From NCBI GenBank assembly GCA_964035545.1, contig CAXIUT010000265.1:1-18969 (forward strand): a stretch of 18,969 nucleotides of DNA, written 5' to 3'. This stretch comes from Bugula neritina (lineage: Eukaryota; Animalia; Bryozoa). Below are positions 1 to 18,878 of this stretch, piece by piece. The translations under genes and the position numbers were made by a program. The notes beneath the pieces were generated by a model. The model did no database searches. It was not told where the DNA came from and saw only the letters and a list, made by a program, of their open reading frames with translations. Each line of letters begins with the position of its first letter. Positions within the stretch are counted from its first letter, which is position 1.

Positions 1-63
1 CCCAACCCCAACCCCAACCCCAACCCCAACCCCAACCCCAACCCCAACCCCAACCCCAACCCC
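1..63 (+). repeat. Left telomere (CCCCAA)n
   Basis: Perfect C4A2 hexamer repeats at the start of the window; this is the Tetrahymena-type ciliate telomere. Confidence 0.98.
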
Positions 64-130
64 GAAATCATGAATCATGAAATCATGAATCATGAAATCA
101 TGAATCATGAAATCATGAATCATGAAATCA
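64..130 (+). repeat. Subtelomeric 15-bp tandem repeat (GAAATCATGAATCAT) x ~4.5
   Basis: Direct repeats abutting the telomere; they create the spurious MNHEI ORF. Confidence 0.9.
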
Positions 131-351
131 TTCAAAGACTTCATAAATCCAAACAAGACTATCAATACAAGATTATCTCTATATCGATGCAGGACTATCT
201 CTACATCGATGCAGGACTATTTATGGATAAAAGACTTTTCACTGAATCTGGTCATTGAAAGGTGATAAAGATATTTAGATAAACTGCAAATAGATATTAT
301 ATTTGAAGAGATGATTGAAATAAATAAATTTGATAGAATATTTAAACAAGA

Positions 352-789
352 TCAATGGATAATAGAGTTGATGGAATCTCTTATGAAGACAGAATGCTAT
401 ATTTTACTATTTCTACATAACTTTTTTAATTTATCCTTCCCACTGAAATCTTTAAACCAATCCACATTGATATTCTCTTTAGGCAATGCCACACTTACTG
501 GAGGCAACTTTTGACTATTCAAGAGTTTTGATTTCTTTGATCGATAAAACAACTTAGGTACTGCTTGGTTGCTGTCTACTCTTGACTTTCCTTTGAGTTT
601 ATCTTCACTTGCTGAGCGATGGAATGTAAACATGAGGGGATCTTTATCTGTGTGTTATTGTTTTTGGGAGTAGAGAGAAGACTATCTGTTTTATTTGGGA
701 ATGAAGAAATCAGAGGGAAGTTTGTTGGATAGAACTATTCTTGCTGCTGCTGTATTAAAGCGGCGCTAACTTTGATTCTTCTTTAGCAT
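352..789 (-). CDS. Hypothetical protein (~145 aa)
   Basis: ATG at 789 follows an AT-rich leader and is in frame with track ORF 397-633 when TAA/TAG are read as sense. First in-frame TGA is at 354-352. No homology recognised. Confidence 0.55.
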
Positions 790-981
790 TCTATTATGAT
801 TATAAAGAAGAATTTATTACTAGCTAGATAAAGTAAATTTGTTATTCATTCAGACAATTATAAAACAATCACATACCAACATTCATTTTATTAACCAATC
901 ACTGCTTTATCTTTGTTTTATTTATACTAGTTCAAAATAAATATAATTTCTAAATATGAAAATCACTATCAATGACTTCTA

Positions 982-2331
982 TCATATCATTATAAAAGAT
1001 GGGGTATTTATGGTTTGGGACTAATATTATAAGACATGTGGAGGGTAGAAACATCCCTTGTTGTTGTGTGGTGATAAAGTATGAACTTTTTTATTTGTTT
1101 ATAACTTGAATGACTCTATTATCTCCTCCACTTGATTATTACTATCAATTTTAATCATAATTGTTCCAGGAGGTCTTTATTTTAAGCCTTTTGCTATCTG
1201 AAATGGTAGTATAAAGTAGTTATTATTTGATTATGGAAGTGACAGTAGAGTACTTTTTAACTACTGCATTGAATCGACTGATAAAACATTAATATTTTTA
1301 AATTTTTTAAGTAAGTTTGTTAATTTTATGTTAGATAGGGCTTATACTATCACTGGTACTGTTTTATTTCTAAAATATTATACTAAATTTCTTAACTATT
1401 TTTATGTTTACAGGAAGGGGATGTTTTATTGGCAAAGATTGATGGTTGGATTGATTATTTTATTAAACAAAATGTATTTTTGTTGATTTTGTTGGTTATT
1501 TTATTATATTAATGGCCAATATGGCACTAGAGAGTATCCTGTTTATTTTATTGCCAAATTGATTTGATTATTAGCTTTACCTTTGAGTATTTAATAACTT
1601 TTATATGATTCCAACATATTCTATGCTATGTTTTTGGTCTATTACTGTTTGTTTATGATAATTATATTCTCAAATTTGTTTAGTTGATATTCTTTGTAGA
1701 AGTCGTTGTTCTAGATGAGAACAAGATCATATTTATTGATTTATTTCAAAGATTTTATGATACTAGCAGGCATATCTCTTCCTTCCTTCTTCATCAACTA
1801 CACATTTTTATTAGTCATATCTTAATATTCCCCACCGCCCCTAACCAAAACATCCAACGATCCTTTTGATTAACCTCCTCTCCCAACCAAGTAGTATCCT
1901 ACTGCTATTGTCAACATATTTACTCCTACATTTTCGTCAGGAATGATCAATACCTTCATATATGGACTAACCACACTTTATAGATAAGTGACTAGTGCTG
2001 GATATAAGATGCCTAGAGCTCTGACCATTTTAGTTTGGTAGGTGTTTTTATTTTTGCTAACTAGAACTTTCAAATGTGGATGTGTGGTTTGTATGTAGGT
2101 GTAGTTGGGATCTGAGTTGTCAAGGATGAGGTGTGAAGTTTAGTGTTTGAGGAAGATGTTTAGTGCTAAAGCAAATATCAATCCTATGATGACTGCTCCT
2201 ATGATTAAAATTCTGATGAGTTGTTTGTTTTTTTGTTATTTTCTTTGTTTTTTCCATTGAATGTCAAGATCTGAAAGCTAGTCAGTATTATGTTCGTCTG
2301 TAAATATTTTGAAATCTTTCTTTTTTGACAT
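982..2331 (-). CDS. Hypothetical single-pass (type II-like) membrane protein, 449 aa
   Basis: TGA-free frame from ATG 2331 to TGA 984-982. A basic N-terminus precedes the hydrophobic segment LIRILIIGAVIIGLIFALAL. No introns are needed. Confidence 0.75.
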
Positions 2332-2380
2332 ACTTATATTATTATTATAAAATTATAAAAAAAGAACTTAGAATACCTCA

Positions 2381-2438
2381 TTGATTAGTTAATTGATTGA
2401 TTGATTGATTGGTTAATTGATTGGTTAATTGATTGATT
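2381..2438. repeat. Degenerate (ATTG)n / TTAATTGATTGG simple repeat in intergenic or 3' UTR sequence
   Basis: ttgattagttaattgattgattgattgattggttaattgattggttaattgattgatt. Confidence 0.6.
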
Positions 2439-2459
2439 ATAATTACGGATGAATGAGAA

Positions 2460-3747
2460 TCACTGGTTGGTTGTGGTTGTGGTTGTTTTGACTGTTTTTG
2501 TAGTTGTAGTTGTTCCTGGTAGAGTTGTTGTGGTTGTTGATGTTGATGGCTGAGTCACAGTTGTTGTGCTTGGTTGAGTCACAGTTGTTGTCGTTGGTTG
2601 AGTTACTCCTGAAACAGTTGAAACTGGAGCTGTGTTGACTATTGGAACTGAAGCTGGTTGGACATTTGTGTTTGTTGTTGTTGCTGTTGTTGATGAGGGT
2701 ACAGTTGTTGGTTGAACTTCCACTGGTTGAATAGATGCTGGAGTCACACTCACTCCTGTAGTACCTGATGGAGTAGTAGTGGTAGTAGTTGATGTAGTTG
2801 AGGTAGTTGAGGTGGGTTGAGTTGTAGTGGTTGTTCCTGAAACTGGCACAGTGTTAGTATTAGTTGTTGATGTAGTAGTACCTGAAACTGGAACAGTATT
2901 AGTATTAGTAGTGGTTTCAGTTGTTGATGTAGTTGTTCCTGATACTGGTACAGTGTTGGTTGTCTCAGTGGTCGATGTAGTTGTTCCTGACACTGGGACA
3001 GTGTTTGTGTTAGTGTTAGTGTTGGTGTTGGTGTTTGTATTAGTAGTCTAAGTGGTTGAGGTGGTTGAAGTGGTGGAAGTGGTTGCTTCAGCAGCTGGAA
3101 CGCTAGCTGAAACATTAGCATTGGCATCAGCATCAACATTATTATTAATTCCTCCGATAACACCTAATCCCCAAAGTAATCCAAGAGTTAATAGGGCTAA
3201 TCCCAATAATCCGATTAATCCCCACACCCATTTGGGACAATGATCTTAAGCTGAGGCTTTAGCTGGTGCACTATATGAAGTATGAGCAACAGCTGGTTCA
3301 TGCACTGTAGTTCTTACTGGTTCTTGAGTTTTGACTGGTTCAACATAGGAAGTATGGACTGGTTCATGTCGTAATGATGAAGTTCTGACCTGCTTGACTT
3401 ATTAGTAAACTGGTTGAGGAGGTGGAACAGCCACTGGTTGTTACACTCTGAAATTAATAGATTATCTACCTATATGCATTGGAACTGGAAACAGCTTGAG
3501 TGGCATTACCGTGATTGAAACTGACTCTTGGAGGAGGAGCGTAAGAGGAAGAGGCTACATTATGAGTAGTGGAGGTGTATGCGGCTGGCGATGTGGACGT
3601 GTTGTAGGTGTTGTAGGAGGGTGAGGTGGTGGTGACGAAGGAGGGAGATGCGGCTTGGTAGTTGGATGATAGACTGTAATAGATGATGGTTTACGGTTGT
3701 CCGTATGAGGATTAGTTGTGGTTGAATCGAATTGATTGGTTGGCCAT
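2460..3747 (-). CDS. Thr-rich mucin-like single-pass membrane protein, 421 aa; join(3747..3470, 3447..2460)
   Basis: ATG at 3747. One 22-nt intron (GTAGATAATCTATTAATTTCAG, 3469-3448) restores the frame into track ORF 2460-2993. TM segment WVWGLIGLLGLALLTLGLLWGLGVIGG is followed by VPVSGTTTSTT repeats. TGA at 2462-2460. Confidence 0.85.
3448..3469 (-). other. 22-nt spliceosomal intron (GT-AG)
   Basis: GTAG...TTTCAG; its removal is required to keep the reading frame. Confidence 0.85.
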
Positions 3748-4090
3748 TGCTTTTCGAATAAATGAATAAAATATATTCAACTCAAATAAAGTCAAATTTA
3801 AAACTCTATCCAGTACTCATATCAAGAACCTTATTTTTAACATGATATATCTTCCAACTTCCTCTCTTGCTTATCACATTAACAACAAATATCACAATCA
3901 TTTGAAACAGCAAAGGCATTGATATCATAATCTCTAATGAATAAATTAAAAGCAGTTTAATGATTAGAAATAAACTATTTTTAATTTAATAATATTAATA
4001 TCATTTGAGTAGAGCTTTATATCTTTGACTAATTTATTAGTTTTAACTATTTGATTAATATCTTTGACTAATTTTAATTATAATTCAACA

Positions 4091-6229
4091 ATGATCGATT
4101 TGCACAACGAAATAGACTTCTCAAAGTAAAACCAATAAAACAACTAATACAAACATTTTTTAATCGAAGCTTGTAGAAAAGTAGAACAATAAGAAATATA
4201 ACATCTTAGAAAAATAAAAAAACCATAACTCGATGATTAACTTATGAACCAGTTTGTTGTTACTGGCATCCCAGTTGTAAAAAAATAAAAACAAGAACAA
4301 TTTGTTCACCTTTTCACCAACAAGCTGCTAGGCGCTAGAAATATAGGATAAAAAAATGGATTAATCAACTTGAATATGGGACTATAAAACAACATTGGCA
4401 ATCAAACTCTATATCTTACCTATCTAACTATAGCATAGGCTAAGGCAGCATTTAACAAACTGAATCATCTGAAATTTGATGCCAACCACAAAATGAGCTG
4501 CATCTGGGCCAATGATATTCGAACAATGATCGAAGAGGACTAGCCCTTAGATGTCTAGTTCAAGAAACCTGTCTTAGGAACTAATGAAGAAAAAAAGGAG
4601 CATAACTTGGATTAGTAGTTTCGAGGGCAGTTTTTAGTTAGAGAAGATAAGATGTTGTACTTGCAGTGGTTGGATCATCTGGATAAAAGCTCTAAAAGCG
4701 TTTTCAACTAAGAATACATTCAGTTGGGCTATTCTATTAGTAAGATGGTGTTTTCTCCAAGAGGAAGTTACTTGGCTGTCTGTTGTCAAGAGGGCACGCA
4801 TGTATACTATGGAAATGGACTGAAGTATAAGGGTTTATTGAAGCAGGTTAATGTAATTGATGCCAAGTTTTCTTATGATGAGAGGTATTTGGTGACATCT
4901 AACGGGAATAATAAAAAAAACAGATAAAATTTTATTTTGTGGGCTTTATAGGAATAAGTTAAAATAAAAAGTTTTAGAGCACACGGCAATCAATCTCTAT
5001 CATCATTTTAATTTTCATAAGATGGTCTTAATTTGGTTATTTCATCATTGAATGAGTTAAATTTTTATCAACTGTCAAGTGTTTAAAATTTGATAAAGCA
5101 AATAAGAGCGCCAGAGGAGTAGCAGCATATAATCAGGGCCAATTTTGTGCAGAAGACAGCTTGGTTGAAGAACAAGAATGAGATCATAGTGATGTGTTAC
5201 GAGCCTGATTACAATCCGATGAGTGCGTCGGCAACTCGCATATTTATATATAATGTTGAGAAGAGGACAGAGAAGAAGTGGAGGGCTTGGGGAGAACATG
5301 CTAAGAATGGGGAGATTTATGTGTCTGAGAAGGGGGAGTGGGTGGCGATATCTTTGAGAAAGTTTGTGAAGAAGGGACATTTTGCTACTGTTATTCAGAT
5401 AGGTAATTTGCTAAAGAGATAATAAACTTTATAGATAAGCAGTCTATAGTTGAAATAGGATGTCGGAAATATAAGTTTTGATGCGATTAACAATCGTTTG
5501 GGAGTGATTTATAAAGATTAGAGCGTGAAGATGATCAATGTGCGATATATAGTGTCTTTTTACGAGTTGTCGATAAGGAATAAATCGATAGAAATAGTGA
5601 AGATAGGAGAGATAGGTAACAATTTACAGAATCGAGTGGCATTGGCCAGTAATGGGGCCTTTTTTGCTTTATATAATATAACTTAAGAGAGTGCAGAGAG
5701 GGGAAGGTTTTCTTTGGGAATGATTACTAAAGAAGTAAAAGAAAAAGGAAAAAAAGTTATACATTTTTAGTTCACTAAACAAAATCTAATGGTTAATGGA
5801 ATGATCTTTTTCCATGTGTAAACATCAGGTAGATTTATACTACTGGGAACATAAAAAGGATATCAAGTTTGGAATTTCATCGGATAAATTGTCACCAAAG
5901 ACACTCTTCAAAAAAATATACGAGACGTACAATGGAGACCCAGAATGTTCAATCGATTGCCAGAACCAGAAGAAAAAGCAATGCACTAACAATAAAAAAA
6001 AATAAGATAAATTTATGCAATTAAAGATTATTAAATGACCCATGCTAACTAAGTTTAAGCTGCAAGGAGGAAACAGAAACGTAAGTAAGATTTTTTGATC
6101 TTTGTTGAAGAGAAAGAAAAATGGTTTAAAGGATTTGTAGAAAGGAGAGAGAAAATACTTGGATTTAAAGAGTTTTAAGTCAAGAAAGATAAGTATGTGG
6201 TCGAATAAGGATTTATCGATCTTTTGTGA
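4091..6229 (+). CDS. EIF3B: Eukaryotic translation initiation factor 3 subunit B (eIF3b/Prt1)-like, 712 aa
   Basis: Single frame from ATG 4091 to TGA 6227-6229 with TAR as sense. N-terminal RRM-like FVVTGIPVV, beta-propeller motifs FSPRGSYLAV and TSGRFILLG..GYQVWNFIG, and the C-terminal QWRPR motif typical of eIF3b. Confidence 0.85.
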
Positions 6230-7061
6230 TTCATTATTCTCATTAGTAACATCGAAATACTTCTTACTAATCATCATTATCATTAATCACAACTCATTAT
6301 TTAATTTTTTATTATGTTTATGGATCTTTAAACAGTTCAATAGACTAAAGTATTGACAATATTTAATTAATGATAAATTATTTTATCTTTCAAATTTAAT
6401 AAAACGGATGTTTTAGTATTCAATCTCTTCAACAATGTTCATTTTAACTACTGATATATTATTGATAGGTCTAGATAGGTCTTGTCTGTAAGAGTTTATA
6501 CTTCTTACGATATAATTCTTAATAATTCTTTTTATATTTTCATATTTGGGAAGGTTTATCTCTATCCAGATAATTATTGATCTTTAATCTAGCTTATAAT
6601 ACCTTGCTCATTTCAATCTACAACATCAAATTTGAAAGTATCTCGATTTATTAGGCATTTAGCTGCAGGGCAAGAGAGTATTCAGAGATATTGATTGATG
6701 GACTTGGTTAGGAAAGGGCATTAAATTAAATCAAATCTATACCAAAAGCTCTAGACAAGTCAAAATTGCACATAGTTATGATGATAAGTACTTATTCTCT
6801 TATTTTTCGATGATACTTATCTTTTCAATATTAAACAGTATTAAATTTTTGAGTTATTTTTCTAGAGCTTGGATAACAATGAGTTCAGAGTGTTTTGAAG
6901 TAAAGAGTAAAGTAAAATAAAGGTGTTTCATAAGATTGGTAGACTGTTTTTTTCTTCAAAGATTTTGAGCAATGAATCTATCAAAATATATAAATATATT
7001 GGTTTGATTTTTATTGAAAAGATAAATATTGTATGAATAAAATAATGAGATGATTTGATGA

Positions 7062-7988
7062 TCACTTTTGGGGAATAACGGCCATGTTGCAGATTCCGCA
7101 AGTTGATTTTCCACCAACAAGTCTAATGAATCCCTTTTCTCCCCAAGTAGCTCCCCAAGAGTTCTTGACCCACCAGTTGTCAGAGCTGACACCAACGAGG
7201 GTAACTCCGTGGTTAAGTCTGGTTCCGCAGTTGCTGAAAACTCCGGATTTGTAAGCTGACCAGTTGGAAGCATCAACAGCAACTGAGACGGGTTGGTTAG
7301 CAATTGAACTTGCCAATTTGTCGCAGCTCTTTATTTCAGTGTATCCTGAAACTTTGTAAGGTCCAGAATCCATCTTGCATGCTTGCTTGACAGCTTTGTA
7401 GGGGTAGTCATCTTCATGGACAATTCCCTTATCTTTAACGTATTTCAAAGCGTTGGTCATAAGACCTCCATTGCAGGCTTGGTTTCCGTATGATCCAGAG
7501 CAATCAACCAATTGGGATTCGGAGAAGCTTTCCAAAGATCCACCGTTAAGCTTGGAAAGACCTTCGAGACCTCCAGTGGTGGAGAAAGCCCAGCATGATC
7601 CGCATTGTCCTTGATTCTTGACTGGAGTGACGGCACCTTGAGAAACCCAATCAATATCGTTCATTTTAGCGCTTCCGGCATCAACGTTGCTGGCTTCACC
7701 GATGAATCCGAGGTATTGTGAAGAGAATTCTTCTTGAGTAAGGGCAGAGAACTGGTTAAGTCCTTGTTCGTAAGTTTGGGTCTTGTCGGCATTGTGAGCT
7801 TCGATTTTGGCGAAGTTTTCAAGGAAGACTCTTTCTCTGTAGGCATTTTCGAAGGTGGAGGTGTAGACAATTCCATGTCTGGCTTTCCAAGCATCGAACT
7901 CTGAGACTTTGTTGGAAGTCTGAGTGTTGAGGAGGAGGGCTGCAGCGCTGATAAAAGCGATGATGACAGCTAGTTGCTTTCCGTTCAT
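7062..7988 (-). CDS. Papain-family (C1A) cathepsin L-like cysteine protease precursor, 308 aa
   Basis: Signal peptide; I29-type prodomain (ERFNIN-like ENAYRERVFLENFAKIEAHN and GLNQF); catalytic motifs QGQCGSCWAF, NHGV and KNSWG. Confidence 0.97.
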   Translation of the reverse strand: MNGKQLAVIIAFISAAALLLNTQTSNKVSEFDAWKARHGIVYTSTFENAYRERVFLENFAKIEAHNADKTQTYEQGLNQFSALTQEEFSSQYLGFIGEASNVDAGSAKMNDIDWVSQGAVTPVKNQGQCGSCWAFSTTGGLEGLSKLNGGSLESFSESQLVDCSGSYGNQACNGGLMTNALKYVKDKGIVHEDDYPYKAVKQACKMDSGPYKVSGYTEIKSCDKLASSIANQPVSVAVDASNWSAYKSGVFSNCGTRLNHGVTLVGVSSDNWWVKNSWGATWGEKGFIRLVGGKSTCGICNMAVIPQK

Positions 7989-8616
7989 ATGAAATAAATG
8001 TTATCTCCCATAAATCAATGGTGCACATATATCTTGGAAGTAGGATTTTTTATTAATCTAGAATTTCAACTTATAAGTTAAAAATATTCAAATATCAATA
8101 TAATAAGCTTCCAGAAATTGATTCATTGAAACGCTAAAAAATCAATCTAACGACTTTAGTAGGTCTTTATAGTATTTTGGGTATTTATTTTTTATTTTGG
8201 AAACAAACTCTTCATAGAATAAGAAAATTTAACGGAAAGCTGAGAAGAATGAAACAATATTATTTAAAAACTTTCTTTAAAAACTTCTTTTTGATCATTG
8301 AAAAATTCAAAAGAGATAAGATAAAAAGTCGAAAAAAGATCTTGATCATATCGTTATGATTCGCAAGATGAGAAAGCTTATACTTCAAGTGAATTCATTG
8401 AAATAACAATCAAATATAACAATTATAGACTGATAAAATGTTCTTATTTTGTTTATTTGCTAATTTTTATTCAGTTTCTTTTCCATAAAAAAAGTTTACA
8501 AGAAAAGATTTTTTTCTTATGTTCAAATAATTGACTACTTATAAATAGATGATTAATTATCTTGATAAAATAAAAATCAATGATATTTTTTGATATATAT
8601 ATTGATCTCTTATAAT

Positions 8617-8695
8617 GGTTGGGGTTGGGGTTGGGGTTGGGGTTGGGGTTGGGGTTGGGGTTGGGGTTGGGGTTGGGGTTGGGGTTGGGGTTGGG
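8617..8695 (+). repeat. Internal telomere tract (GGGGTT)n, the right end of the 1-8695 mini-chromosome
   Basis: About 13 G4T2 repeats oriented as a right-hand telomere. Confidence 0.95.
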
Positions 8696-10432
8696 AATAG
8701 GGCGACAAAAAAATCACAATATTAGATGCCTTAATGTTTTAAAACAACCTAAGAAGTACTTTAGCATCCAGACTGGAAATAATATCGAACAGCAGAAGGA
8801 AAGAAATTTTACTATAATGCTATTACAAGAAAGTCATGCTGGCAACTACCCAATGAAGTCAAAGAATATCGAATTAAATTATAATAGAAGAGAAGGAAAG
8901 ATCGAGAATAGGGACGTGTTATAGAGTAGTAAGTATTATCTGAAGCTGAAGTTATTAGAAGGAAGCTGATGGCTTTGTTCAAGCAGAAACTTATTGGAGT
9001 GAATACAAAGTGGGATGCCTGTATGAAATTGTGTGAGGATGATGATAGATGGAAATTATTAAAGATAAGTGAAAAGAAGAAGCATTTTATTGATTATATA
9101 AATGAGTTGAAGAAGATAGGTGAGAAGTAGAAAAAGGCTAAAACTGAAGTGAATAAAATTCAATTTTTGAAGATGTTGAAATAGAATAAAAAATTGACTT
9201 CTGATTGCAAGATGCATAAAGTAGCTTATGATTTCATAGCAGATCCAAGATGGAGATTGCTTGATGATCATTAACGAGAAAATACATTTCAAAATTATAT
9301 GGATTAGTTACTTCAAAATTAAAAATAATAGGCCAATAAAGTCAAAAGATAAAATAGTTAAGCTTTCAGATTGATACTTTAAAAGGATAATATTAAGCAT
9401 AATTCAAGATGGGCAGATATCAGTAATTTCTATAAAGAAGAACCATCTTTTAAAGCTTTGCATCCTTATGATAGAATAAGTACCTTTTTGGATTATATTT
9501 TTTAATGCTAAAAACGATGGGAATAAGAACAAGCTAAAGAACGTAGATTACGTGAAAGAGTGAATCGAATTAACTATCGTAATCTTTTAAAATAAAAAAT
9601 ATCTACTGGAGATTTAAGTTACAAATCAAAATGGCGTGATTTTTTAGGAGATTTTAGAAATTAAAGAGCATTGATAGCCATGATGGACTCTTCTCAATTA
9701 GGTACCTCAGCACATTAAATATTTGAACATTTTATGTAAGATGTCCGTGAGAAGCATAAATTGATAAAAAGTTTAATAAAGCATCATTTTAAGAAAGTTA
9801 GCTTCAAAATGACTGAAACAGTTACAAGATAAGAGTTTATTTAAAAATTAAAAGATATGCCTTAGTACGTTTAACTTCCTGAACATATTAAAAATTATTT
9901 TTTTAACTATTTTTTGATGAAAATAAAAAATAAAAAATAGAATAAACAAGCTAGTGCTAAGAAGTCTTCTAAAAAGGAAAGAAAAATTATATTTAGAATT
10001 TTTTAACATCTACAAATCAAAGGATAACTTAAAAATAAGTATAGTATCGAAAGTCAAATGGATTATATTGAAAAAAATATGAAAGAAAGTGGCTTTTCAG
10101 TGACTCCTTAAACCATTTTTAAATATTATTTAGCTTTTCTTGAAAGTAATTAACAAGGTAGTAATCGAAAAGGATCAAAATAAAGATCTTCTGATAGTTC
10201 GAAAGAAGGAAAGTCTCGACATAAAAAGAGACATAAAGTCTAGGAGATAGAAGATACTAATGAATTGGCATCTTCTTTAAGAAAATTTACGATACCCTAG
10301 TTAGCTGAACTGAAGAAGCAGCAAATGAATTAATGCTAGGAGTAAGGAGAGATAAAAGATGATTCTGATGAAGTTAAAAAGAAAGTTAAGCATAAAAAGA
10401 AGAAGAGAAGTTCATCAAGTGATTCAGATTGA
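8696..10432 (+). CDS. PRP40: Prp40/PRPF40-like U1 snRNP-associated splicing factor (WW + FF domains), 5'-truncated
   Basis: The frame starts mid-WW1 (NRATKKSQYEMPE). WW2 is [26 protein letters not shown]. FF repeats include DDRWKLL, DPRWRLLDDHERENTF and GTSAHEIFEHF. The tail is K/S/E-rich with EEEGEI. TGA at 10430-10432. Confidence 0.9.
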
Positions 10433-10494: not shown

Positions 10495-10687
10495 ATAAAT
10501 ATAAAAGTAATAGGATACAAAATCACAAAGAAATTAGATGATGGTTAGGATTGTGAGAAGATCAGAAGATTCTAAGTTGAATATTCAATACGACTGAATC
10601 GTTGATTGAGTACTCATGCGTCTTCTAAAGATGACTTAGTTCGTACGCTAAGGTTATTTCATAGTATACTTCTAAGGTTATATGAGA
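10495..10687. repeat. Outer inverted repeat, left arm (shared 3' end of the micro-exon genes)
   Basis: Reverse complement of ~16026-16216 with only a few substitutions or indels. Confidence 0.9.
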
Positions 10688-12387
10688 TGATACGCATAGC
10701 GACTGAGATAAATGATTTTCATACTCTGGAGTAAATCAATGCTATACGACGGCATCGACTGACATTATTTGAAAGTTACGCTTTATCATTCAGTTTCATA
10801 CGGCTTTTTTAAAGGATCATTACACTAGGATAGAATAGGATATACAGCAGCAACTTGAATTAAAGAATAAATACTCTTAGTTATCGATATTTTACTCTCT
10901 GAATTGAATAAAATATTACCTTCACTGAGGTAAAAGAATTATTACTGGCTATGCTAGATATTTTGATACTCTTTATATTAAAAAACTTATACTTCTGAAT
11001 TTTATGACTTATACTAAGAGCATCAGCTATTTTTAAAAACTTTATACGGTTGCCTGTATTTTATTAACTTTGTACTCTTCATTAATAAAGAAAATACGTC
11101 GGCATCTAGGTTTAATAATTAAATACTCTTTAGTAAAAGGAATAATACGACTATTTTAATAAACAAATACGCTTCAATAGGATAGATGATACGGCTTCGA
11201 TCTTGATTAGATAAGAAATACGTCTTGATTAAGAATGTAGATACCAGCGTCCACTATAATAGAAAAGTCAGTACACTGAATAACTTAATAAATACAGCAC
11301 CAGCTATTACTAGACAATTTGATACCATTTCCAACTGAAAATTAAAAAGAAAATACTCTATAATAGATAAAGAAATACGTCCTCTGAAGTTAATAAGAAT
11401 ATACTGACTGAATGAAATTATTTTTACGCTTAATTATCTAAGATATACAGCTGAATAGTGAAATATTTTACTTTCTGAGATAAAATGTTTAATACTCTGG
11501 AATAAAAATAGTTGTACTCTCACTAATATTAGATATTTATTACTCTAGAATAATAAAAGCTTTACAACTACAATTATCTTATTAATACGCTTAAATTAAT
11601 AAAAATAAACGTTTTCAGTCTTAATAATCTTGTTCATACCTTTTCTGAAAGTAACAAAGTTCATACTCTTATATTAAAAGAAATAATACGACATCAGCTG
11701 TGATTAAATAACTTATACCAGCATCGGCTATAGTAAATATATTTATACACTAAATTGACTCAAATATACATCGTCTTCATAAAAAGATTAATACTCTAAA
11801 ATTATACATATTTTACGGCGAGATCTGCCTGAAAATTATTTTCAAAGTACGACTAATATTAAATCAAATCATACTCTTCATTAGTGGAATCATTACATCA
11901 CCTAAAATAAACTAAAATGTACTGTCTAAAATGAAAAATGTCATACCCTGCATTCAAATTAAATGTACAACTAGAGTTAGCTTATTTTATACACTTTGTA
12001 AATTAATAAAATACGGCAGCTTAAATAAAAAAGTCGATACCCTTAAGTAAAGGAATATTTACTTCTGACATTATGGGAAACTGTACCCTGAGATGAGAGA
12101 AATAATACATCTAAGGATGGGCTATGATATACCCTATGATAAAAAATGAGGTACAGCCTGAGTAGATAAAGATAGTACGGCTTCCTGGAATAGAAAAAAA
12201 ACTACTCCCTGGAGTAAAAGAAAGTATACGTCTGTTTAAATAAAGAAATTACTGTGAGCTTCTAAGTTTTAGATAAAAGATACTCTGAATAAAATCGATA
12301 TTACAAGGCTTTTTGAGAGAGATAATACCTCAATCCCATGGCGAGGGCGATAAGGACCAAAAGGGCGATAAGTTTGATGGATGACAT
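10614..12387 (-). CDS. Micro-exon gene B: 70 coding exons, 69 introns, secreted 106-aa protein
   Basis: Removing all ~20-22-nt GT..AG introns gives a stop-free 321-nt ORF: MSSIKLIALLVLIALAMGLSLKAHNGEAADEAAFDSDIADLANDSDAADVKKTENLMRKTLKDIGNAGALDADIEALNADSNPDALKTMKRIAASLDAVIAMQQDA*. Mean intron length is (1774-321)/69 = 21.1 nt. Confidence 0.88.
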
Positions 12388-13380
12388 AAGATTCAAAAGG
12401 AGGATAAATATATTCCAAAATAAGTGAAGAAATACTTGCTGAAAGATTATTGTCTGAGGTGTTAATTTCAACTCCTTATTTTTATCAGAGTTTATAAGAG
12501 CTCTTTTTGTGAGTTTCTAACTCTATCATCTTATACGTTAAGCTTAAACAATTGAACCAAAGAACTACACAGGCCAATAGCTTTCTTTTCATAAATGACT
12601 TGCATTTTATAAAGAACTTAACCATTATTGAGAAGAAAAAATCAATTAGAACCTTAAGAAAGACGGATAGACCTTCTCGAAGAGACTTATCTACTTTAGA
12701 CACCAAAACAAGCCTTCTGGTATTCAGATATTTGAAGATAAGTCTTTTGACTAAATGCTAAGTCACCGGAATATTTAGAAAAAACTTTTATTTTAACAAA
12801 AAGTAGTATTTTTTCTTTTAATATTCTTACTTTCTGTGTCTTTTAAAGACAGAAAAAAATTGTTAAATGATTTTTTCCCATTTTTTATTTGAAAACATCT
12901 ATTAAAGAATCTCTATTAAGAAAAAGAAAAAAATCATGAACGCGGTTAAGAATATTTCGATTTAAGGATACAAGAAAATTAGTATTATAGCTTTATTTAA
13001 AGATTATGAAGAGCTTAAAGTACTACTAGGTATTTTTTTTTTGTTTCAAAGATTCCAAAGATGACAAATAAATCGTAAAATAAAGTAAATTACTCTAATT
13101 ATTCTCTTTTAAGGATTACTTTAATGTTAAAATACTCTAAAAATGATTATTTATATATTTTTGTTTTAACATTTTTCTTTAAACTTCTCTTTTAAAGGCA
13201 CTTAAAACGAACTATGATTACGGTTCACTATATTCTAGCTTTAAAATACCTGTTAAACATAATTATTCAAAAATAAACAAGATTTTAATAGGCTAATGTC
13301 CTACTAGGTCAAGTTTTAGATATTCTAAAGTAACAAAAGTCATAAATCATAAAATAAAATGATAAAAATAGGGTTTTTTT
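12016..13380. repeat. Inner inverted repeat, left arm (1365 bp)
   Basis: Reverse complement of 13478-14842 (coordinate sum 26858, confirmed by the mirrored ORFs in the track). Spacer is 97 bp. Confidence 0.95.
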
Positions 13381-13477
13381 TGATCGAAATAAGAAGAGAA
13401 TTTCTTAATAGATGGTAATAGTTCAAAAATAAAAAGGAATACTTGATATTTATGGCATTTTAAATCCTTTTTACTTG

Positions 13478-14842
13478 AAAAAAACCCTATTTTTATCATT
13501 TTATTTTATGATTTATGACTTTTGTTACTTTAGAATATCTAAAACTTGACCTAGTAGGACATTAGCCTATTAAAATCTTGTTTATTTTTGAATAATTATG
13601 TTTAACAGGTATTTTAAAGCTAGAATATAGTGAACCGTAATCATAGTTCGTTTTAAGTGCCTTTAAAAGAGAAGTTTAAAGAAAAATGTTAAAACAAAAA
13701 TATATAAATAATCATTTTTAGAGTATTTTAACATTAAAGTAATCCTTAAAAGAGAATAATTAGAGTAATTTACTTTATTTTACGATTTATTTGTCATCTT
13801 TGGAATCTTTGAAACAAAAAAAAAATACCTAGTAGTACTTTAAGCTCTTCATAATCTTTAAATAAAGCTATAATACTAATTTTCTTGTATCCTTAAATCG
13901 AAATATTCTTAACCGCGTTCATGATTTTTTTCTTTTTCTTAATAGAGATTCTTTAATAGATGTTTTCAAATAAAAAATGGGAAAAAATCATTTAACAATT
14001 TTTTTCTGTCTTTAAAAGACACAGAAAGTAAGAATATTAAAAGAAAAAATACTACTTTTTGTTAAAATAAAAGTTTTTTCTAAATATTCCGGTGACTTAG
14101 CATTTAGTCAAAAGACTTATCTTCAAATATCTGAATACCAGAAGGCTTGTTTTGGTGTCTAAAGTAGATAAGTCTCTTCGAGAAGGTCTATCCGTCTTTC
14201 TTAAGGTTCTAATTGATTTTTTCTTCTCAATAATGGTTAAGTTCTTTATAAAATGCAAGTCATTTATGAAAAGAAAGCTATTGGCCTGTGTAGTTCTTTG
14301 GTTCAATTGTTTAAGCTTAACGTATAAGATGATAGAGTTAGAAACTCACAAAAAGAGCTCTTATAAACTCTGATAAAAATAAGGAGTTGAAATTAACACC
14401 TCAGACAATAATCTTTCAGCAAGTATTTCTTCACTTATTTTGGAATATATTTATCCTCCTTTTGAATCTTATGTCATCCATCAAACTTATCGCCCTTTTG
14501 GTCCTTATCGCCCTCGCCATGGGATTGAGGTATTATCTCTCTCAAAAAGCCTTGTAATATCGATTTTATTCAGAGTATCTTTTATCTAAAACTTAGAAGC
14601 TCACAGTAATTTCTTTATTTAAACAGACGTATACTTTCTTTTACTCCAGGGAGTAGTTTTTTTTCTATTCCAGGAAGCCGTACTATCTTTATCTACTCAG
14701 GCTGTACCTCATTTTTTATCATAGGGTATATCATAGCCCATCCTTAGATGTATTATTTCTCTCATCTCAGGGTACAGTTTCCCATAATGTCAGAAGTAAA
14801 TATTCCTTTACTTAAGGGTATCGACTTTTTTATTTAAGCTGC
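13478..14842. repeat. Inner inverted repeat, right arm (1365 bp)
   Basis: Mirror of 12016-13380. Contains ~990 bp of upstream DNA plus exons 1-13 of the micro-exon gene. Confidence 0.95.
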
Positions 14843-16099
14843 TGGTATATATCAAATAATTTTAGCCAGTATGAATTTAATAACCAAGATGTATGATATT
14901 TTTGATATTTAAGGGTATAAAATATGTTACTTTAGCCGGTATAATTTTTTATATTTTAGCCGGAGCCGTATGATTAGAATAATTGAAGGCAGCTCTCGGT
15001 ATGAGATCCTATAAAGCTAGCTGATGACGTATGATAGATGAGAAATTAGAGTATTGAAGGTTTGACTTAGATGCTGGTATTAATTAGATAAGAATAGATG
15101 GTATTATAAAAGTTATTTAGCCTAAGTATTAGTTATTTGAATATAGTGTACTAAAATAGTAATTGAAGTCGTTCTTTATTGACTAATTTCAGAGTTAAAA
15201 TAAACTTATTCAGAAGTATTTTATTTTCTACTAAGGGTTTTTTGTATTTTACTTAGTCGTAAATATCAAGTCTATTAAGTGTAAAACTATTGAAATTTTA
15301 GTTGACGAAACTGTTGATGCCGTAAAATTGTTAATTATTAAGAGTACTTAGTCAATAAAGATAGTCGTATTTATTAATTTAAACAAAGAGTATTCTATAT
15401 TTTATTTAGTTGCTGGCGTATTCTTTTAACAACAAAGGGTATATTATTATTTAGTTTTAGATTCTGACAAAGTATTTTTACTTCTAAGTGAGGCCGTATT
15501 TATATATCAAAAAAGAATGTATGATTAATTTTATTTAGGGTATATCTATTTTTGAGGAAGAAGTACTTATAAAATAACATCAGCTCGTCACAGTATATTT
15601 CAAAATAAGTCTAGGCTGTAACTTTATATTTATTTTAGAATGTGGACAGTATTGATTGATTTATCATAGCTGTCAGTATAAATTTATTGATTGAAGAGCG
15701 TATTAAATCAATCACAAAGCTGAAGTATTCATATTTCTATTAAGTTCCGTATTTGTTTTATCATATCAGTCCGTATTAAACCAATTATCTCAGAAAGTAT
15801 TCCCCTATTTACAGCAGAAAGTATAAATCATCTAAATGTAGTGAAAGTTTCATTTTGTTAATCAAGAGTATACTATCTTTAACCCAGAATGTATTAGTCT
15901 ATCTAATATAGTCGTCGTATATCATCTTTTAATTCAAGGGTATTGTCTTTGTCATTCAGCTGACCGTATTAAATCAATAACCCAGTCATCAGTATCAATC
16001 TTAGTCATCTTTAGAGGCTAGTAATTCTCATATAACCTTAGAAGTATACTATGAAATAACCTTAGCGTACGAACTAAGTCATCTTTAGAAGACGCATGA
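14471..16099 (+). CDS. Micro-exon gene A: 64 coding exons, 63 introns, secreted 102-aa protein
   Basis: Removing all ~20-23-nt GT..AG introns gives a 309-nt ORF: MSSIKLIALLVLIALAMGLSLKAHNGEAADEAAANAAGAAALADDNADA[TAA=E]FKVFDETVDAIIAGDSDKANELVTANVDTVKPEFLQKMKKFVADLIKAKQDA*. Mean intron length is (1629-309)/63 = 21.0 nt. Confidence 0.88.
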
Positions 16100-16216
16100 G
16101 TACTCAATCAACGATTCAGTCGTATTGAATATTCAACTTAGAACCTTCTGATCTTCTCACAATCCTAACCATCATCTAATTTCTTTGATTTTGTATCCTA
16201 TTATTTTTATATTTAT
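16026..16216. repeat. Outer inverted repeat, right arm
   Basis: Near-identical reverse complement of 10495-10687. Covers the last exons, the stop codon and the 3' UTR. Confidence 0.9.
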
Positions 16217-17593: not shown

Positions 17594-17662
17594 GATTGAT
17601 TCTATATTATAAATATCAATATTAAATTGAAGTATTAGAGAAACAACTATTTTAATTAATGT

Positions 17663-18878
17663 GATAATGATGATATAAAGTATTGATTGATTGAAGATAG
17701 ATAGTTGGTATATCTCTTAATAACTATATTATTTCTTGATACAACTGACAATACTGAATGATAATGATGATAAAAGTATTGATTGATTGAAGATAGATAG
17801 TTGGTATATCTCTTAATAACTATATTATTTCTTGATACAACTGACAATACTGAATGATAATGATGATAAAAGTATTGATTGATTGAAGATAGATAGTTGG
17901 TATATCTCTTAATAACTATATTATTTCTTGATACAACTGACAATACTGAATGATAATGATGATAAAAGTATTGATTGATTGAAGATAGATAGTTGGTATA
18001 TCTCTTAATAACTATATTATTTCTTGATACAACTGACAATACTGAATGATAATGATGATAAAAGTATTGATTGATTGAAGATAGATAGTTGGTATATCTC
18101 TTAATAACTATATTATTTCTTGATACAACTGACAATACTGAATGATAATGATGATAAAAGTATTGATTGATTGAAGATAGATAGTTGGTATATCTCTTAA
18201 TAACTATATTATTTCTTGATACAACTGACAATACTGAATGATAATGATGATAAAAGTATTGATTGATTGAAGATAGATAGTTGGTATATCTCTTAATAAC
18301 TATATTATTTCTTGATACAACTGACAATACTGAATGATAATGATGATAAAAGTATTGATTGATTGAAGATAGATAGTTGGTATATCTCTTAATAACTATA
18401 TTATTTCTTGATACAACTGACAATACTGAATGATAATGATGATAAAAGTATTGATTGATTGAAGATAGATAGTTGGTATATCTCTTAATAACTATATTAT
18501 TTCTTGATACAACTGACAATACTGAATGATAATGATGATAAAAGTATTGATTGATTGAAGATAGATAGTTGGTATATCTCTTAATAACTATATTATTTCT
18601 TGATACAACTGACAATACTGAATGATAATGATGATAAAAGTATTGATTGATTGAAGATAGATAGTTGGTATATCTCTTAATAACTATATTATTTCTTGAT
18701 ACAACTGACAATACTGAATGATAATGATGATAAAAGTATTGATTGATTGAAGATAGATAGTTGGTATATCTCTTAATAACTATATTATTTCTTGATACAA
18801 CTGACAATACTGAATGATAATGATGATAAAAGTATTGATTGATTGAAGATAGATAGTTGGTATATCTCTTAATAACTA
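17663..18878 (+). repeat. Subtelomeric 96-bp tandem array, ~12.7 near-identical copies
   Basis: Period is 96 (sequence lines 17701, 18181 and 18661 are identical). The array runs directly into the telomere. Confidence 0.97.

Follow-up and report, generated by a model that had tools for sequence, protein, structure and literature searches.

How did two adjacent genes come to possess identical ends and middles that no longer align? This question is raised by a locus lying between positions 10495 and 16216 of contig C274 (CAXIUT010000265.1), deposited under Bugula neritina in assembly GCA_964035545.1 (216 Mb, 321 contigs). The whole contig of 18,969 nucleotides (nt) was analysed and is called the window here; it is assigned below to a ciliate. 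The two genes, A and B, stand head to head, and a first-pass annotation made from the sequence had taken them for a constant-variable-constant cassette locus with a possible role in mating type, recognition or antigen variation. The explanation that appears reasonably probable to us is that an old duplication placed the genes head to head and that arm-to-arm gene conversion has since homogenised the promoter-proximal 1.37 kb as well as the 190 nt at the 3' end. The feature that is surprising for a specialist is the structure of the genes, not the cassette pattern.

Layout of the Inverted Gene Pair

The left half of the window was compared by blastn with the reverse complement of the right half, and a repeat search of the window gave the same result. 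The inner arms, 12016-13380 against 14842-13478, were inverted and identical over 1365 nt (100% identity, no gaps). The outer ends, 10495-10687 against 16216-16026, were 97.9% identical over 193 nt, with two mismatches and one indel; all three differences fall in the terminal exon, and the 130 nt adjoining the middle are identical. Between these constant parts, the middles of gene A (10688-12015, 1.3 kb) and gene B (14843-16025, 1.2 kb) were unalignable, a single 27-nt match being at chance level. Identity ends inside exon 14, where a common ctgc is followed by c in A and by tg in B, and resumes inside an intron. The description given in the first-pass annotation, with identical upstream DNA and first 13 exons and introns, a near-identical 3' end of about 190 bp, highly divergent middles and an abrupt stop of identity in exon 14 with resumption in an intron, was thereby confirmed at both borders and in all parts.

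The start codons are located at 12387 (-) and 14471 (+), and the genes point outward. The duplicated unit (10495-13380, 2.9 kb), which begins at the gene's 3' end and takes in about 1 kb of upstream DNA, is mirrored around the spacer, and the homology ends within a few tens of bases of the ends of the neighbouring genes. The 3' constant part of gene A contains an intron tail, the last two coding micro-exons, the exon with the stop codon, two post-stop introns and the terminal exon. The features are listed in Table 1.

Table 1. Features of the window, and unitigs of the public short-read run X1 placed on the gene pair.
Feature	Position	Strand	Remark
Gene A, 3' constant part	10495..10687	-	98% identical to 16026-16216
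Gene A, variable middle, about 53 introns with micro-exons	10688..12015	-	no alignment to B; single copy in assembly
Gene A, ATG to TGA	10614..12387	-	frame-blind parse
Gene A, exon 1, 59 nt, signal-peptide-like N-terminus	12329..12387	-	mean hydropathy 2.74, residues 5-17
Left perfect arm: gene A exons 1-13 (12016-12387) and about 990 nt upstream	12016..13380		100% over 1365 nt
Non-palindromic 97-nt spacer, centre of symmetry	13381..13477		repeat search; X1 unitig
Right perfect arm: upstream DNA and gene B exons 1-13	13478..14842		repeat search, blastn
Gene B, ATG to TGA	14471..16099	+	frame-blind parse
Gene B, exon 1, twin of gene A exon 1	14471-14529	+	
Gene B, variable middle, about 47 introns with micro-exons	14843..16025	+	single copy in assembly
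Gene B, 3' constant part	16026..16216	+	matches gene A 3' end; X1 unitig
Terminal-exon motif, gene A	10539..10558	-	also in C270 gene
Terminal-exon motif, gene B	16155-16174	+	also in C270 gene
X1 unitig, A-middle	10658-12045		depth 23.6
X1 unitig, arm	12016-13380		depth 50, twice flanks, no variant letters
X1 unitig, spacer and 30 nt of arm on each side	13351-13507		depth 21.4
X1 unitig, B-middle	14813-16055		depth 24.8
X1 unitig, 3' constant part	16026-16187		depth 39
Papain-family protease gene	7065-8000	-	ordinary neighbour
FF-domain, PRP40-like gene	~8727-10429	+	ordinary neighbour
Thr/Pro-rich, mucin-like membrane protein gene, 57-nt repeats	2463-3776	-	no Pfam match

Gene Models and Micro-Exons

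Gene models were derived by a dynamic-programming parse that is blind to the reading frame and removes GT..AG units from each ATG onward. In both genes a dense succession of GTA...AG units, each 20-23 nt long and set 1-20 nt apart, begins after exon 1 (59 nt). Once the units (71 in A and 65 in B, of which two in each gene lie beyond the stop codon) were removed, both frames were open from the shared ATG to the same TGA in the common 3' part. The model of gene A spans 1774 nt (82% intron), with 69 coding introns, a coding sequence (CDS) of 321 nt for 106 amino acids and 25 one-nucleotide exons; that of gene B spans 1629 nt (81% intron), with 63 coding introns, a CDS of 309 nt for 102 amino acids and 17 one-nucleotide exons. 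The exons that follow exon 1, 69 in A and 63 in B, measure 1-20 nt and mostly 1, 2 or 3 nt. The density reaches one intron per about 4.7 coding nt, or about 210 introns per kb CDS.

The units were uniform in form, with a GTA start in 131 of 136, an AG end in 136 of 136, and an A at position -7 in 52 of 71 units in A and 43 of 65 in B. The GC content was 48% in exons vs 25% in units. The pattern GTATN{14,16}AGN{1,3}GTA was found 50 times in the window, against 1.45 expected from shuffles, and all 50 matches were inside these two genes, on the coding strands only; no unit chain was present elsewhere in the window. The introns are in phase 0 in 32 (A) and 27 (B) cases, in phase 1 in 36 and 35, and in phase 2 in one each. 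As introns occur almost only in phases 0 and 1 (130 of 132), a one-nucleotide exon always supplies the first base of its codon. By their form, which is like that of the introns of an HSP90 gene on contig C241 (see below), the units would be ordinary spliceosomal introns of this ciliate. The open frames, the codon periodicity and the contrast in GC content emerge only once the units are taken out, which lends indirect support to their removal from the RNA.

The introns at 10648..10693 (-) are adjacent tandem copies with a period of 24, made up of a 22-nt intron and a 2-nt exon, and showed a similarity of 0.71 against a background of 0.43. Tandem duplication as a general origin of the introns was considered and rejected, intron-to-intron similarity being at background (0.43) except in this one adjacent pair.

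Predicted Products

The predicted proteins begin with a hydrophobic, signal-like N-terminus, which is their only hydrophobic stretch; no membrane span follows it. The rest of the protein is acidic, with 18 (A) and 17 (B) Asp and Glu residues vs 9 and 9 Lys and Arg, and with about 21 alanines. The mature parts have no cysteine and contain amphipathic helical stretches. In view of the signal-like segment, the products are predicted to be secreted proteins of about 100 amino acids, with a mature part that is probably helical.

Proteins A and B have the first 33 residues and the last 3 in common. Their middles are weakly similar (z = 2.0 vs shuffles) and have the same composition and the same codon periodicity; in both, G occupies 46-53% of the first codon positions and C+T 72-76% of the third. 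The middles share 22 intron positions vs about 18 expected by chance, an expectation that is a rough estimate, and this count is therefore uninformative; judged by eye from the models, several introns occupy matching positions towards the C-terminus, where the alignment is better. Together with the corresponding open frames, these resemblances indicate that the two genes are homologous throughout and do not carry unrelated inserts.

Read Support and Copy Number

Unitigs of the public short-read run X1 were placed on the locus and depth was read for each piece (Table 1). They tiled the locus exactly and reproduced every junction, with an arm-to-flank depth of 2:1, and the spacer unitig linked the arm to its own reverse complement, the arm being present in both orientations. 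The depth of the arm (50) equals that of the A-middle (23.6) plus that of the B-middle (24.8), and therefore the arms are not an assembly collapse, an outcome that the first-pass annotation had named as fatal to its reading; the 2:1 depths without arm variants speak against it likewise. For the same reason, a third middle attached to the same arm must be below about 5%.

Two further studies supplied runs X4 and X5, which are filed under other organism labels and gave 2-5x depth. Contigs of X4 cover parts of both middles; the eight pieces listed, four of them in the A-middle, all had 0 differences, and the B-middle was seen in X4 only as depth, with 15 of 16 placed contigs at least 99% alike. 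The contigs of X5 matched the A-middle with 0 differences. At window position 15728, in an intron of gene B, X1 has C and the contig T, a difference that reflects either an allele or a mistake in the assembly.

Arm, 3' end, A-middle and B-middle were without a further copy anywhere in the 216-Mb assembly, so that a search for the constant ends joined to other middles on other contigs, as proposed in the first-pass annotation, returned none there. An exact look-up in other assemblies of two small open reading frames, which span the spacer and the A border respectively, gave no match. A related genome with this locus was not found either, the other runs being identical in sequence.

It is very improbable that the arrangement is an artefact of assembly, produced by a fold-back or chimeric long read or by diverged paralogues collapsed into identical arms. 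The contig has at least one odd join, as seen in the internal telomere tract at 8617-8702, and the assembly is that of another organism, with the ciliate as a minor passenger; both points would leave room for such an error. However, independent X1 unitigs reproduce all junctions, with no arm variants, 2:1 depths and a single-copy spacer, and the low-depth contigs of two other studies agree letter for letter.

Origin of the Identical Ends and Divergent Middles

The identity over 1365 nt includes about 990 nt of non-coding DNA and 13 introns, and therefore does not come from selection on the protein. Identical introns together with about 1 kb of identical upstream DNA require recent homogenisation or recent copying of the ends, and the fully unalignable adjacent introns are incompatible with a recent duplication.

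The sequence of events that we favour would have started with an old inverted duplication of the 2.9-kb unit, consisting of the gene and about 1 kb upstream, around the 97-nt spacer. The middles would then have diverged until their introns were unalignable and their proteins only weakly alike. The inner 1365 nt, comprising the promoter, the 5' untranslated region, the signal peptide, the first 33 codons and 13 introns, would have been overwritten by gene conversion, that is, by non-reciprocal recombination of one inverted copy with the other, and a separate event would have overwritten the final 190 nt. The sharp borders, one in an exon and one in an intron, would represent the ends of conversion tracts. 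In the 3' part a second tract may lie inside an older one, which would fit the confinement of the 3' differences to the terminal exon beside 130 identical nt next to the middle. The outcome would be two distinct mature proteins with identical promoters and secretion signals and near-identical 3' ends.

Several points weigh against this explanation. Gene conversion is deduced from the pattern of identity, and the 190-nt island of identity, 1.3 kb from the arms, requires a second, separate conversion tract. Splicing is likewise read from the sequence: searches of public runs brought up none with RNA of the ciliate, and the RNA-labelled run X12, which had nothing from the locus, is silent on expression because it belongs to the organism naming the assembly and not to the ciliate. 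The three studies may all carry the same clone, and short-read unitigs cannot separate A-B molecules from a mixture of A-A and B-B isomers. Finally, the ciliate is only partly represented in the assembly, so that it counts for little that no family members sharing these ends were found.

A recent complete duplication, in which the middles diverged very fast under diversifying selection or local hypermutation and the ends were constrained, appears highly improbable. Secreted proteins are often fast-evolving, and it is the mature parts that differ most; but the introns of the middles are unalignable beside introns that are 100% identical, which selection on the protein cannot bring about, and no mutational gradient was seen at the borders.

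Two anciently diverged, idiomorph-like alleles might also have been captured side by side through an inverted duplication between homologues, their flanks having been kept identical by free recombination in the population before the capture. This would yield the same pattern of identical flanks, sharp borders and an old divergent core, but it is quite unlikely, as it needs an additional step that was unobserved. The 3' flanks beyond the genes are wholly different, with the FF-domain gene on one side and another gene and a 96-nt satellite on the other, and therefore A and B are not alleles now. In addition, 0 differences in 1365 nt vs 3 in 193 nt suggest at least two homogenisation events of different age.

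The remaining alternative is that proposed by the first-pass annotation, namely cassette replacement or programmed choice, in which the constant parts act as recombination handles and the middles are drawn from a larger set. This set would consist of family members or of germline-limited cassettes, with the choice made through ectopic conversion or in the course of macronuclear development, and would result in self/non-self or variant surface proteins. In its favour are the constant-variable-constant layout with borders that ignore exon and intron limits, the head-to-head pair with predicted secreted products, and the fact that the data sample no micronuclear DNA. One X1 contig, moreover, leaves the locus at 14860, 18 nt past the border of the arm. 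Nevertheless, swappable cassettes are unlikely here: handles and middles are confined to this single locus in the assembly, the arm depth equals both middles summed and so leaves no room for a third above about 5%, and the same letters recur in runs of two further studies. The whole promoter region lies in the constant part, the opposite of Tetrahymena MTA/MTB, and the predicted proteins have about 100 amino acids, with neither cysteines nor a membrane span beyond the signal peptide. Of the two processes that had been put forward for the identical ends, recent homogenisation thus stands, on the identical introns and about 1 kb of upstream DNA, and cassette replacement is not supported, no further copies having been found in the assembly. 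Arm-to-arm conversion was judged the likeliest account, ahead of a swappable mating-type cassette. Concerted evolution at the two ends of an inverted duplicate offers an ordinary explanation for the cassette-like pattern, and the mating-type story is unsupported.

Comparison with Known Systems

The architecture combines things that are known separately, an inverted duplicate with concerted ends and an extreme micro-exon gene. In the ampliconic palindromes of the primate Y chromosome and in plastid inverted repeats, the arms are kept identical by arm-to-arm gene conversion. The present pair resembles them in its inverted arms of about 100% identity, its short unique spacer, the inclusion of non-coding DNA and the abrupt ends. 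It differs in arms of 1.4 kb with a second island of identity 1.3 kb outward, in that the arms bear the promoters and 5' ends of otherwise diverged genes, and in its setting on a polyploid ciliate macronuclear minichromosome.

The MTA/MTB pair of Tetrahymena thermophila has its specific part in the centre (intergenic region and 5' parts) and its constant part at the 3' ends, encodes large multi-pass membrane proteins and draws on a germline cassette array. Both systems consist of a head-to-head pair in which sharp borders separate constant from specific segments. In contrast, here the centre (12016-14842) is 100% identical and the gene bodies are divergent, the products have 106 and 102 amino acids, and the assembly holds no further cassettes. 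The analogy with this mating-type pair, drawn in the first-pass annotation, is thus not supported, in view of the reversed geometry and the small, predicted secreted products. Genes of the Euplotes pheromone type agree with the pair in a small secreted protein with a conserved pre-pro part and a variable mature part, but not in their cysteine-rich fold, as no cysteine is present.

The micro-exon genes (MEGs) of Schistosoma have micro-exons of 6-36 nt, in multiples of three, which are separated by long introns and used for exon skipping. They share with the pair small secreted proteins, a signal-peptide exon 1 and a remaining CDS made up mostly of micro-exons, whereas in the pair the exons measure 1-20 nt and are not multiples of three, the introns are 20-23 nt long, and phases 0 and 1 prevail.

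One-nucleotide exons have been published as isolated rarities in Arabidopsis (PMC4674806) and in Fusarium CYP621A (PMC12940212). Like those, the ones predicted here are flanked by GT..AG introns; unlike them, 25 and 17 occur in a single CDS of 0.3 kb. A survey of ciliate introns reported 2.87 introns per kb CDS as the highest density, and tiny introns with a narrow length range in three peritrichs and Paramecium (PMC13685798); the corresponding value for the pair is about 210 per kb CDS. Literature searches brought up no report of intron arrays or micro-exon genes from ciliates.

Significance of the Gene Structure

Taken jointly, it is likely that these genes are among the most intron-dense protein-coding genes anywhere, that their layout is old and maintained, that splicing works with exons of one base and that the arms serve to co-express the partners equally. 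The constant and variable parts would then form a natural experiment: in the overwritten parts the introns are identical, and elsewhere every intron sequence has been replaced. If the proposed history is true, the hyper-fragmented layout and the rule of phases 0 and 1 persisted in both copies and would be old and maintained rather than a recent accident; the pair would show that a gene can long retain one-letter exons and an intron share of about 82%. Fixed-length, intron-defined splicing would then cope with any exon length down to one base, and, provided that the units are spliced, exon length would set no lower limit on splicing in this ciliate. These points bear on intron recognition (intron definition with a length ruler), on intron multiplication, and on the reasons for which such genes escape gene finders and homology searches. 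The two mature proteins would receive the same promoters, signal peptides and 3' ends, an arrangement suited to equal co-expression, and with its identical promoters the head-to-head pair is suited to testing co-expression and possible pairing of the products.

A Third Micro-Exon Gene and the Terminal-Exon Motif

Among 20 contigs examined (about 184 kb, 18 of them with telomere repeats), only C270 had a unit chain. The micro-exon gene on this contig (L021:634-1150) has a signal-like first exon followed by at least eight back-to-back GTA..AG units of 20-24 nt, with exons of 1-11 nt, and its 3' layout and motif are as in the A/B pair. No unambiguous open frame was derivable for the C270 gene.

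The terminal-exon motif had three matches in the 216 Mb and 0 in the control. As it is common to the pair and the unrelated C270 gene, part of the 3' similarity may be under selection. Matches to the motif at 39 metagenome loci were discarded as chance, none being telomere-bearing and none having intron chains.

Source Organism, Contig and Neighbouring Genes

The assembly belongs mainly to another eukaryote, with the standard code, long introns, megabase contigs (C2 and C9, with HSP90 genes) and AGAGTAG-type satellites; the share of the ciliate consists of small telomere-capped contigs (C241, C260-C280). A third HSP90 gene is located on C241, a telomere-capped, gene-sized chromosome that measures at least 3.5 kb and has a C4A2 telomere on the left. 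This gene has 28 in-frame TAA/TAG codons and 20-nt GTA..TAG introns, and its TAA/TAG codons align mostly with Glu of other HSP90s (14/31). Because of these codons and introns, the window is assigned to a ciliate with a peritrich-type code that is a passenger in the assembly, and the gene pair sits on a telomere-capped macronuclear minichromosome of this ciliate. The same ciliate DNA recurs in three studies, whose runs bear three organism labels, so that the ciliate probably lives as an epibiont or is a culture passenger.

Contig C274 ends in C4A2 repeats on the left and in G4T2 repeats on the right. The internal G4T2 tract at 8617-8702 has 14 telomere repeats. Positions 1-8702 have the appearance of a complete 8.7-kb minichromosome with a telomere at either end, and the part from 8703 on has a left end without C4A2 repeats. 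It is probable that C274 unites two macronuclear molecules or that it stems from a read chimera. Scanning the window for Rfam families and tRNAs gave no match. The protein-coding neighbours of the pair are given in Table 1. Subtelomeric tandem repeats adjoin both telomeres, with 4.5 copies of a 15-nt unit on the left (64-131) and 12.7 copies of a 96-nt unit, at 99% identity, on the right (17662-18878).

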